A DNA stretch of 64,000 nt, taken from Macrostomum lignano (Eukaryota). Below are positions 4,001-7,000 of this stretch, one piece after another. Location: the NCBI GenBank assembly GCA_002269645.1, contig NIVC01000920.1, positions 248,001-312,000 on the forward strand. The letters are read 5' to 3'. Under the pieces are notes generated by a model, which was not told where the DNA came from, searched no databases, and saw only the letters and a list, made by a program, of their open reading frames with translations. The translations under genes were made by a program, and so were the position numbers. How positions within the stretch are numbered: the first letter of the stretch is position 1; each line of letters begins with the position of its first letter.

Positions 4001-7000
4001 GGCGGCTGGATCGGCCAGCTGGAGCTGGTCGGCGATGATGGCCAGCTGGGTGGCCAGCGACTGTCGAGGAGCTTCGTCCTCGTCGGGACGGCACTGCTCT
4101 CCGGCCAGCTGTCCGAGTTTACTGAATGCCCCGGCCAGCACGCCAGCCCCGTCGTAGTCGAGCCGCAGGCAGTGCAGCGCCAGGGCATAGAACTCGGCTG
4201 TCGGCATTTTAACCCGACGCTCGCCGTCTGCGTCGACGTCGTTGCCGTCGTTAATTTCGTTGATGTCGTTGTCCTCTGGGGAGCGGACAATGCGAGCGGC
4301 CCGGGCCCAGTCGACCTGAATGGATATATTGTCCATTAGTTAGTTAGTTAGTTAGTTAGTTAGTTAGTTAGTTAGTTAGTTAGTTAGTTAGTTAGTTAGT
4401 TAGTCAGTTAGTTAGTTAGTTAGTTAGTTAGTCAGTTAGTTAGTGAGTTAGTTAGTCAGTTAGTTAGTTAGTTAGTTAGTTAGTTGGTTAGTTAGTTAGT
4501 TAGTTAGTTAGTTAGTTAGTGAGTTAGTTAGTTAGTTAGTTAGTTAGTGAGTTAGTTAGTTAGTTAGTTAGTTAGTTAGTTAGTTAGTTAGTTAGTTAGT
4601 TAGTTAGTTAGTTAGTTACTTTCAACCCAACAAGCAAAGCAAATTCGACAGACCAGCAGGCGCAGCAGCGGCAGGCGGTGCGGGCAGCTGCTGTATAGGC
4701 TGAGCAGGTAGCGGGTCTTCTCCAGCCCGATCGTGTTCATGCTGATGTCGCAGTCCATCGAGTCGTCGCTCTCAACACTCAGCTGACAGCGGATGAGCGG
4801 CACCATGCGGTTCTCAGCCAGCAGCTCCACCTTGTTGGTGGCCACCCTGTCGAGAGCGGGCGACACCGCATTGCGCAGCCAGTGCCGCTGAAGCTCCGCC
4901 GCTGACAGGCCGGACAGCTCCGGCTGCTGAGCTTCCCTCGACGCTGTCACGCACAAATCGACATCGGAGCTGACCGCGTCACAAAGGAAGACGGAGGCCG
5001 AGCCGTAGACGGCGACGTCCAGCAACCGGTGGTTTCCGTCGCTTCTCTTCACAGTGGCGTCGATAGCCGAGCGGATGAGGGCGGCGGCGGTGTCGGCCCG
5101 GCCGACGGCTTCGCTCAGCGCCGGCAGCGACTCGCGCAGGCTGGCGATCGCCGACATGCCGACGTCGAGTTGAAGATTCCGCTCGGCACTGGGAGCGGCA
5201 GCTGATTTGGTCAGCAGGTCGCCGATGTCGCAAAGAATGTCGGCGACAATCCAGGGGAAGCTGAGGCCGAGAGGGCGTCGACGGCGAGCCTCGGCCGAGT
5301 CCTCCAGGTCGACATCGTAGCTGACGTCGTCGGAAGCCTCGGCGTCGCGGGCGTGCCGGGCGGCCACGAAGTACCAGGCGGCCGCCTTGGCCCGCTGCCG
5401 GTCCGCGGCGTCCTGGCAGCCGCTGCCGCCTCCGCCGCTGTACAACTCCGGGTCGGATTCGAACTCGCGACGGTACCTGAGCAGAGGATGCCGCAGAATT
5501 GGGAATTGTAGTACAGCGGATATTATATAAAACATACTGATTGTATTGCCATCGATTCATGAAACTTTTGAGTTAAGGTTTATTTATCTTAAAGCGCTTT
5601 AACTCTACTCTACTAGCAGTAGACATATAGAAAGTTACATGTATAAACATTAATAAATAATAAATTTTATTGACAAGTCTACTAATAGCGGAAATACGAG
5701 ATTCTAGGGAAGTGGGAAAGAGGGGGAGAGGGAAAGAGGGGAGAGGGGAAGAGGGGAAGAGGGGAGAGGGGGAGAGGGGAAGAGGGGGAGAGGGGAAGAG
5801 GGGGAGAGGAGGAGAGGGGGAGAGGGGAAGAGGGGGAGAGGGGAAGGGGAGAGGGAAGAGGGAAGAGGGGAAAAGGGGGAGAGGGGAAGAATGGAAGAGG
5901 GGAACAGGGGAAGAAGAGGAAGAGAGGAAGAAGGGAAGAGGGGAAGAGGGGAAGTGAGCATATGAGGCAGAGCCGAGGTGACAAGATCCAAGCCAAGCTC
6001 AGACTTGCCTGGCAAACAGGGCATCCCGCGCCTCTCGCAGTCGCCTCTGCGCAGAGCCCAGGTCTGAGCGCAGAGTGGAGTGCCATCTCATGCTCCTGGC
6101 CAGGGCCAGCTCCCTCTCGCTGGCCAGGCCCCACTGGCCCAGCAGGGCCCGAACATCCATCTGGTAGCGGGCCAGTTCGATTCGAGCTTTCGAGGCGAAT
6201 TTCTCCCAGCCAGGCCAGGAGAGAATCGGGTTGTTCGCAGCGTCAGGCTCGGTGCCTGTTGGCTGCCCCACCGCCTGCTCAAGGAGGTCCCAGTCCAGGG
6301 CGTAGGTGAGGCAGCGCCGGTACAGCTGCCCCAGCAGCTTCTCAGACTTATAAGTCTTTTTGGCCGGCTTCTCCATGAAGTCCGGGTAGCCTTCATCCTG
6401 CACTTTCTCCAGGGCTTTCTTTGGAACCTGGTAGGTGGAAGACAGCCGCGTTTCAGTGCATAACCCACAGAACACCCCAGTGCATAACCCACAGAACACC
6501 CCAGTGCATAACCCACAGAACACCTCAGTGCATAACCCACAGAACACCCCAGTGCATAACCCACAGAACACCCCAGTGCATAACCCACAGAACACCCCAG
6601 TGCTTAACCCACAGAACACCCCAGTGCATAACCCACAGAACACCCCAGTGCTTAACCCACAGAACACCCCAGTGCATAACCCACAGAACACCCCAGTGCT
6701 TAACCCACAGAACACCTCAGTGCATAACCCACAGAACACCTCAGTGCATAACCCACAGAACACCCCAGTGCTTAACCCACAGAACACCCCATTGCATAAC
6801 CCACAGAACACCCACCTGCGGCACAATGCCAGTCTTTGGAAAGTCCACAGCCACAGACTGGGACTCGGCCAGCTTCCTAGCCAGAGGATCGCAGGCCCCA
6901 TCCTGCAGCAGGTCACATAGGGCCAGATGCATGTGCGCCACGCGGCCAAGGAAAGTGTTCTCCAAATTGGCCAGGTAGAACTCGGCCACCAGACCGGACG

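Follow-up and report, generated by a model that had tools for sequence, protein, structure and literature searches.

Amplification of silencing RNAs through RNA-dependent RNA polymerases (RdRPs) relies on helper enzymes that add tails to the 3' ends of RNA. RNA-directed RNA polymerase complexes (RDRCs) pair the polymerase with a nucleotidyltransferase (NTase) and a helicase, as in Rdp1-Hrr1-Cid12 of Schizosaccharomyces pombe and the Rdr1-Rdn1/2 complexes of Tetrahymena, and Caenorhabditis elegans combines an RdRP and DRH-3 with the poly(UG) (pUG) tailing carried out by RDE-3. For Cid12, Rdn1/2 and the pUG tails of RDE-3, there is continuing debate over how tailing and RdRP initiation are coupled. 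Here we describe a gene from the flatworm Macrostomum lignano in which, as far as can be read from sequence, the RDRC composition of RdRP, helicase and NTase is in effect contained in one chain. The gene occupies positions 22906 to 1018 on the minus strand of a 64,000-nucleotide (nt) stretch of contig NIVC01000920.1 (assembly GCA_002269645.1, positions 248,001 to 312,000 of the forward strand), hereafter called the window, and encodes a predicted protein of ~2,900 amino acids (aa). Positions are those of the window, and its features are on the minus strand unless stated otherwise.

Fusions of a helicase to an RdRP have been described before, as a two-domain DEAD-Helicase_C-RdRP architecture (PMC4791657, PMC3661229). 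These proteins, which include RrpA/B/C of Dictyostelium and members from peronosporomycete oomycetes, Hydra and Nematostella, belong to the same family as the window gene, and Hydra LOC105846402 and the dictyostelid RdRPs are direct homologues over its whole length. To the published architecture the present analysis adds an NTase, a KH-like unit and a triphosphate-tunnel domain. The words 'Nucleotidyltransferase' and 'PAP' are absent from the text of PMC4791657 and 'nucleotidyl' from that of PMC3661229, and Pinzon et al. (2019) make no mention of a nucleotidyltransferase. Our literature searches returned no description of a cellular RdRP-NTase fusion or of the tunnel domains; a prior description is possible. 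A match to the palm family PF22600 was already precomputed in public tables, and the NTase domain was thus visible to databases. The gene is a new, fused form of a known partnership between RdRP, NTase and helicase.

Like the RDRCs of S. pombe (Rdp1, Hrr1 and Cid12) and Tetrahymena (Rdr1 with the uridylyltransferases Rdn1/Rdn2), the window protein has a cellular RdRP, a superfamily 2 (SF2) helicase and an NTase of the Cid1-like superfamily. Unlike them, it carries all three in one polypeptide, together with zinc, KH-like and tunnel domains; its helicase is of the Dicer/RIG-I-like receptor (RLR) type, and its NTase is compared with theirs at the level of the superfamily. With EGO-1/RRF-1 and DRH-3 of C. 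elegans it shares an RdRP and a Dicer-related helicase, and its N-terminal domain appears to resemble the RNA-end-binding C-terminal domain (CTD) of DRH-3. A further nematode parallel would be the RDE-3/MUT-2 poly(UG) polymerase together with PIR-1, in that a template-preparing NTase is combined with 5'-triphosphate handling, the latter assigned here to a tunnel-fold domain. In contrast to the flatworm gene, the nematode genes are separate, and PIR-1, an RNA polyphosphatase, is a cysteine phosphatase and not a tunnel enzyme.

The RdRP-NTase junction and its conservation

The end of the RdRP and the start of the NTase are encoded by one exon (4654..5476), which holds the C-terminal tail of the polymerase followed by the N-terminal helix and palm of the NTase. 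The RdRP itself was recognized from PF05183 matches on four consecutive exon open reading frames (ORFs; best E = 4.2e-26), and its catalytic DLDGD (within GGDLDGDQ) is at 7122-7136. Alignment to solved RDR chains identified the first 90 residues of exon 5476-4654 as the true RdRP end. Arabidopsis RDR2 (7eu0, 1133 aa) aligns through ...ASAWYYVTYN, residue 1089, which stands opposite the window motif at 5362-5391, and in the RDR chain 7w82 (1024 aa) SFPWIICDTL (residues 982-1001) aligns with the window motif at 5233-5265. The G-S...D-x-D motif of the NTase follows ~75 residues beyond the RdRP tail.

An earlier note on this DNA, made from the sequence alone, had placed the terminal RdRP motifs and the NTase motifs in a single exon with limits 4654-5476, and had argued that the fusion does not hinge on any splice prediction. 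Both statements hold. Every motif quoted for the RdRP end and the NTase lies in one stop-free ORF (4612-5535, 307 aa), an AG acceptor and a GT donor are present at the proposed limits, and the homologous M. lignano locus on contig NIVC01001144.1 has one ORF, 1106 codons long (L001:11228-14548), that extends from ahead of DLDGD through the NTase. The interval that the note had assigned to the NTase, 4200-5476, does contain the start and palm of the domain; its low end was set too short, as the central domain runs on in the next exon (4315-3293) to ~3800.

An artefact, in which a false assembly join, a pseudogene or a pair of neighbouring genes was mistaken for one gene, is hardly credible. The exon boundaries upstream of the fusion are approximate, which leaves this explanation some room, but both in the window and at the M. 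lignano locus a single ORF, with no splice in between, encodes the RdRP tail together with the NTase palm, and on this ground the two-gene reading was rejected. The spliced path of the window gene is also free of internal stops, and gene models from RefSeq and elsewhere show the same architecture in Hydra, dinoflagellates and liverworts.

The fusion is real and old. A profile built from the window sequence and the M. lignano homologue recovered, from 1.84 billion representative proteins, 86 at E <= 1e-3, 58 of them at E <= 1e-10. It was this exhaustive profile search that revealed the family: a word-based homologue search with the 1007-aa C-terminus found M. lignano alone, and one with the 24-sequence alignment found none. 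All representatives in which the NTase motif is preceded by 450 aa or more (41/41) carry the DxDGD of an RdRP, at a median of 367 aa before the NTase. No stand-alone NTase member was evident among the profile matches, in which the short proteins look like fragments and the few that were checked came from short contigs. Named members include Hydra vulgaris LOC105846402 (2566 aa; XP_065649345), the dinoflagellates Prorocentrum, Polarella and Effrenium, the zygnematophyte alga Mesotaenium, the liverworts Riccia sorocarpa and R. fluitans, and the dictyostelids Synstelium, Cavenderia and Dictyostelium. In the Hydra, Prorocentrum and Mesotaenium proteins, Pfam domains occur in the order DEAD/ResIII, Helicase_C, RdRP and PF22600. 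The window gene is a new member of a family that is widespread but under-described.

Because the fusion is conserved across organisms as distant as liverworts, dinoflagellates, Hydra and a flatworm, we argue that the coupling between tailing and the RdRP is direct. A covalent link sets the stoichiometry of the two active sites and how close they lie, and one recombinant protein would be enough for studying their coupling; M. lignano and Hydra are also experimentally tractable. The fusion could in addition explain a gap in the flatworm repertoire. Fontenla et al. surveyed flatworms and found RdRPs in Macrostomum and no orthologue of RDE-3 in flatworms (PMC5594548), and a tailing-type domain is now seen inside at least one M. 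lignano RdRP gene, the one examined. The flatworm solution appears to be a fused NTase domain.

The closest named protein to the window product is the M. lignano homologue (41-46% identity); between 22906 and 1018, the window gene and the locus of this homologue on NIVC01001144.1 are collinear (tblastn). A 211-aa fragment from a public sequencing run seems, by eye, closer than this homologue over the stretch that it covers. The annotated model at the M. lignano locus (L001 7316-16529), BOX15_Mlig023635g1 (1486 aa), looks truncated at both ends: on the same strand it is flanked by helicase ORFs immediately upstream and, immediately downstream, by ORFs with homology to the last exons of the window gene.

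Fold, active site and candidate substrates of the NTase

The NTase was identified by sequence and by predicted structure. On the bare ORF, PF22600 (the MTPAP-like_central palm family) scored 30.4 bits (E = 4.8e-7), above its curated cut-off of 27 bits. Compared with Protein Data Bank (PDB) sequences, the window NTase alone gave a marginal match to GLD-2 (E = 1.8), and a profile of 24 family sequences matched GLD-2 (1.6e-11), CutA (6e-11) and TbTUT4 (1.1e-10), followed by Tailor, MEAT1, Cid1, TUT4, TUT7, Trf4 and URT1, so that terminal transferases only were found at significant E-values. The alignments of this profile to GLD-2 and CutA cover positions 27-270 and reach across the helical central domain. 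The NTase and downstream sequence (520 residues) were modelled with AlphaFold2, and the model had a mean predicted local distance difference test score (pLDDT) of 80.4 and a predicted template-modelling score (pTM) of 0.71. In a Foldseek search of the PDB with this model, the top 26 matches were all non-canonical terminal NTases (E = 1.7e-6 to 1.3e-3, probability 1.0), among them CutA, GLD-2, Cid1, TUT1, TbTUT4 and RET1, over alignments of 320-540 columns, most of which take in the palm and the central domain.

The same Foldseek list bears on a different kind of enzyme, a signalling protein of the OAS/cGAS/CD-NTase kind that would make a nucleotide second messenger in response to double-stranded RNA produced by the RdRP. 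CdnC, OAS1, cGAS and CdnE do appear (E ~0.015-0.04), but they fall short of the matches to Cid1, GLD-2 and CutA by three to four orders of magnitude; OAS, cGAS, CD-NTases and Pol lambda were met at E > 0.01 only, and the sequence profile was significant for terminal transferases alone. Judged by the weaker Foldseek E-values and the profile matches, the OAS/cGAS-like reading is very improbable and was rejected.

Relative to Cid1, GLD-2, CutA, TUT4-7 and TbTUT4, the fused family shares the fold of the palm and central domain and the signature of G-S, DxD and a third Asp. It differs from them in that sequence identity is just 12-16%, in that IEDPF...H/N is not present, in an invariant G..K of its own after the third Asp and a W-P motif, and in that, wherever the sequence extends far enough upstream, the domain is preceded by an RdRP.

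All catalytic residues are present in the window copy. The NTase motif with YGS...SDVDL lies at 4948..5007, with part of it at 4999-5004 and the first two catalytic Asp codons at 4963-4965 and 4957-4959; VPLIRC follows at 4786-4803. CDISMN (4735-4752), aligned with VDLNANN of GLD-2, contains the third catalytic Asp codon (4747-4749) and is followed by the family-invariant G..K (GLEKTRY), the whole segment spanning 4693..4752. In diverse alignments of 28 and 24 members, the invariant palm columns are only G, S, S-D-x-D, the third D and the family-specific G..K, which sits ten residues after the third D (D148, G155 and K158 are invariant in the 24-sequence alignment). G-S-D-D-D was read in ~85 of the ~87 rows that cover the palm, from animals, plants, amoebae and alveolates.

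The main claims of the earlier note about this domain were that it is a terminal uridylyltransferase/poly(A) polymerase (TUTase/PAP)-like NTase, for which it had proposed a structure check for a Pol-beta fold, that all three catalytic aspartates are present, and that no canonical nucleotide-recognition motif can be recognized downstream. The first is upheld by the PF22600 score and by best profile and Foldseek matches to Cid1, GLD-2, CutA and TUT enzymes. The aspartates can be read in the window ORF and fall in near-invariant columns of the family, and the family consensus likewise has no canonical recognition motif, showing a W-P motif instead. The note's wording 'apparently active' is a fair description of what the sequence of the window NTase suggests, and with the modelled fold added, the domain is quite probably an active transferase. 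Its suggestion that the domain may mark templates or tail RdRP products in cis is reasonable by analogy. The note did not recognize the helicase, RLR-CTD-like and tunnel domains of the same gene, or the wide conservation of the family.

Our explanation of the locus is a single-chain, RDRC-like protein whose catalytically competent NTase tails RNA 3' ends in cis, with the template favoured as target, and we consider this probable. The predicted domain order would be an RLR-CTD-like zinc domain, a Dicer/RLR-type helicase, the RdRP, a Cid1/GLD-2-type NTase, a KH-like unit and a triphosphate-tunnel barrel. The NTase would add untemplated nucleotides in cis to RNA 3' ends handled by the RdRP; tailing in cis is the most likely mode because the domain is joined to the RdRP tail through a few tens of residues. 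The favoured target would be the 3' end of the template, where a tail may create or mark an initiation site, as has been supposed for the pUG tails of RDE-3, for Rdn1 and for Cid12, and the less favoured target would be the 3' end of the RdRP product. By the same analogy, the protein may serve in small-RNA amplification. The template as main substrate has a chance that we put somewhat below even.

Product tailing, in which the NTase would uridylate or adenylate nascent antisense or small RNAs and so control their stability or loading, is the strongest competitor, and by analogy the product is a possible, if on the whole unlikely, main substrate. The fold and the active site speak for it as much as for template tailing. 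The nearest solved relatives (Cid1, TUT4/7, Tailor, GLD-2 and CutA) act on the 3' ends of finished RNAs, the RDRC-dependent small RNAs of Tetrahymena carry untemplated U, and the modelled C-terminal tunnel domain suggests a hold on the 5'-triphosphate end of the product. Set against this, RDE-3 and Rdn1, the best-understood NTases linked to RdRPs, act on templates, and the sequence does not tell product from template.

Several observations weigh against template-directed tailing by an active enzyme. The preference for template over product is drawn solely from analogy. The TM-scores of the Foldseek matches are moderate (~0.5 when normalized to target length) and the root-mean-square deviation is ~8 A, in part owing to insertions with pLDDT < 50. 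The canonical nucleotide-recognition motif (IEDPF...H/N), which sets specificity for A or U, for example through His336 of Cid1, was not found in the family consensus, where a structural equivalent is possible; h-x-h-W-P stands in its place. With this motif not visible, the nucleotide added is not predictable. By sequence alignment, the position matching N171 of Cid1, which we take to be a contact to the incoming nucleoside triphosphate, is not Asn, and the family-specific invariant G..K is found there. Since both the canonical motif and this Asn appear to be missing, the NTase could use an unusual substrate or be impaired.

The last of these points comes from Dictyostelium discoideum, where the paralogue ACTFIW_000419 (2381 aa) keeps the domain without catalytic residues. 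Its NTase (residues ~1790-1900) is degenerate: it reads SNLNL in place of SDxDh, has Leu at the position of the third Asp and has lost the G..K, in contrast to the intact domain of the window gene; the dictyostelids Cavenderia and Synstelium retain SDxD...D. Persistence of a domain without catalytic residues suggests that it also has a non-catalytic role. It would fit a pseudo-enzyme, mainly structural or RNA-binding, whose carboxylates bind metal or RNA and do not support tailing, and the apparent absence of the canonical recognition motif points the same way. Yet the loss of catalytic residues in this paralogue also makes their conservation elsewhere informative: G-S, DxD and the third D stand in ~85 of the 87 rows, which span animals, plants, amoebae and alveolates, a degree of conservation that is hard to explain without catalysis, and the window copy has every catalytic residue. 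We consider a pseudo-enzyme improbable.

Domains flanking the RdRP-NTase core

The helicase is encoded on the same strand as the RdRP and is of the Dicer/RIG-I-like kind. Its exons (18028..22163, limits approximate) were recognized from Pfam DEAD/ResIII and Helicase_C matches on ORF pieces and contain GSGKT, DECHH and the Helicase_C region. For the helicase of the family, the best match was an ancestral Dicer helicase (1e-37), followed by Dicer-2, MDA5, LGP2 and RIG-I. Between it and the junction exon lie the linker region and the RdRP exons (6009..15429, several limits approximate), assigned by Pfam (PF05183) and by tblastn collinearity with the M. lignano locus. At that locus the helicase ORF continues into the linker region, and in the window a single ORF joins the linker region to the start of the sequence corresponding to the RdRP ORF of the M. 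lignano locus. Because the ORFs of the two sources, taken together, overlap across the linker, the link between helicase and RdRP appears to be independent of splicing.

Exon 1 (22536..22906; ATG 22906-22904), defined by its translation and donor site, encodes a zinc domain of ~120 residues, the first of the protein, in which four Cys arranged as CxxC...CxxC are invariant in 17 family members. Pfam assigned RIG-I_C-RD to 9 of these 17 (best E = 3.1e-5) and Yippee-Mis18 to 10. Neither Pfam family was assigned to the copy in the window itself, for which JmjN (E = 0.26) was the sole match listed, and its assignment thus rests on the family alignment. In the PDB, the zinc domain is matched over its full length by the C-terminal domain solved for a 'Dicer Related Helicase' (6m6r, E = 0.016). 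At the level of family sequences, the domain resembles the RNA-end-binding C-terminal domain of RIG-I and DRH-3 as well as the Yippee/Mis18 fold. Its place is different, N-terminal and before the helicase, whereas in RIG-I-like receptors it lies behind the helicase.

Downstream of the NTase palm, the next exon (3293..4315), joined by an in-frame splice and interpreted with the AlphaFold2 model, encodes the NTase central (PAP-associated-like) domain from 4315 to ~3800, a KH-like unit (~3551-3742) and the first strands of the barrel from ~3508. The KH-like unit, between NTase and barrel, is modelled as beta-alpha-alpha-beta-beta-alpha, the topology of a type I KH domain, with a degenerate GXXG loop, and the family profile gave weak matches to the KH domains of hnRNP K in the PDB. 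The KH assignment is tentative; from the model, the unit is probably one that binds single-stranded RNA.

The last ~470 aa (1018-3508) were modelled by AlphaFold2 (pLDDT 76, pTM 0.80) as an eight-stranded triphosphate-tunnel barrel. Their best Foldseek matches were RESC1/2 (8cdp, E = 5e-9) and Pct1, the RNA triphosphatase of S. pombe (4pn1, E = 1e-3), with weaker matches to YgiF, the mimivirus capping triphosphatase and CYTH proteins. The metal-binding signature ExExK was not found in the barrel family, whose consensus has YFMEGS in the first strand and FCELSL in the last, with one acidic residue each; both of these residues are Asp in the window. A Cet1-type triphosphatase was considered for the barrel and not called, since ExExK is absent. 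RESC1 and RESC2 have a Cet1-like tunnel fold and both are without two of the three catalytic glutamates, and RESC2 binds the 5'-triphosphate of guide RNA (PMC10201420). The window barrel is predicted to share the tunnel fold with RESC1-RESC2 and with Cet1/Pct1; it differs in having no detectable sequence similarity to them and no ExExK, and either binding or hydrolysis is open to it. A RESC2-like binder of 5'-triphosphate ends is plausible from the model, because RdRP products start with a triphosphate. Together, the tunnel-fold and RLR-CTD-like domains suggest built-in handling of 5'-triphosphate ends, which bears on how RdRP products are told from other RNAs.

A bolder proposal treats the whole protein as a self-contained machine for small-RNA amplification of ancient eukaryotic origin, with one step per module, of which the split RDRC and mutator complexes of yeast, ciliates and nematodes would be derived, disassembled versions. 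In such a machine, the RLR-CTD-like domain and the Dicer-type helicase would select and unwind RNA, the NTase would tail the template 3' end, the RdRP would initiate de novo, and the tunnel barrel would capture or dephosphorylate the 5'-triphosphate of the nascent strand. We regard this proposal as speculative and rather unlikely.

Exon structure, introns and neighbouring sequence

Exact boundaries are given for the four C-terminal exons only, which are backed by homologues. These exons (5476-4654, 4315-3293, 2683-2105 and 1617-1018) join in frame through canonical sites to give 1007 residues up to the stop codon (1018-1020). The splice 4654|4315 is in frame and forms a family motif starting LLRLL|, the family version of the 'K-W-A-K' helix. 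The last two exons, together spanning 1018..2683 and supported by frames, splice sites and the AlphaFold2 model, encode a basic or low-complexity linker and the rest of the tunnel barrel. For the gene as a whole, a simple dynamic-programming gene model yielded a stop-free spliced path from the ATG to the stop codon at 1018-1020. The model over-extends exons into open tandem repeats and invents exons of 4 and 10 nt, and its upstream limits are unreliable.

The last intron before the fusion exon (5477-6008) is apparently of the GC-AG type, with the donor AG|GCAAGT at 6009 and the acceptor at 5477. This choice alone keeps the frame and matches the homologous junction, ALFAR|YRREF in the window and ALGNKYRRIF at the M. 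lignano locus.

Nearly every examined intron of the gene is mostly filled by a tandem-repeat array of its own, in which units of 4 to ~36 bp recur in 15-110 copies. The arrays lie within 416-20541, for example at 416-958, 1672-2088, 2695-3251, 4336-4618, 5707-5954, 6454-6813, 7216-7656 and 7886-8266. Exons have a G+C content of 60-75% and introns a far lower one. Several arrays are open in the coding frame and thus mislead ORF-based exon calling. Beyond the gene, GC-rich exons on the opposite (plus) strand at 28770-30700 look, by eye, like those of an amino-acid permease or cationic amino-acid transporter (for example, ...AIFAYSGFESVSNAAEECRNPRRDLPIALL...).

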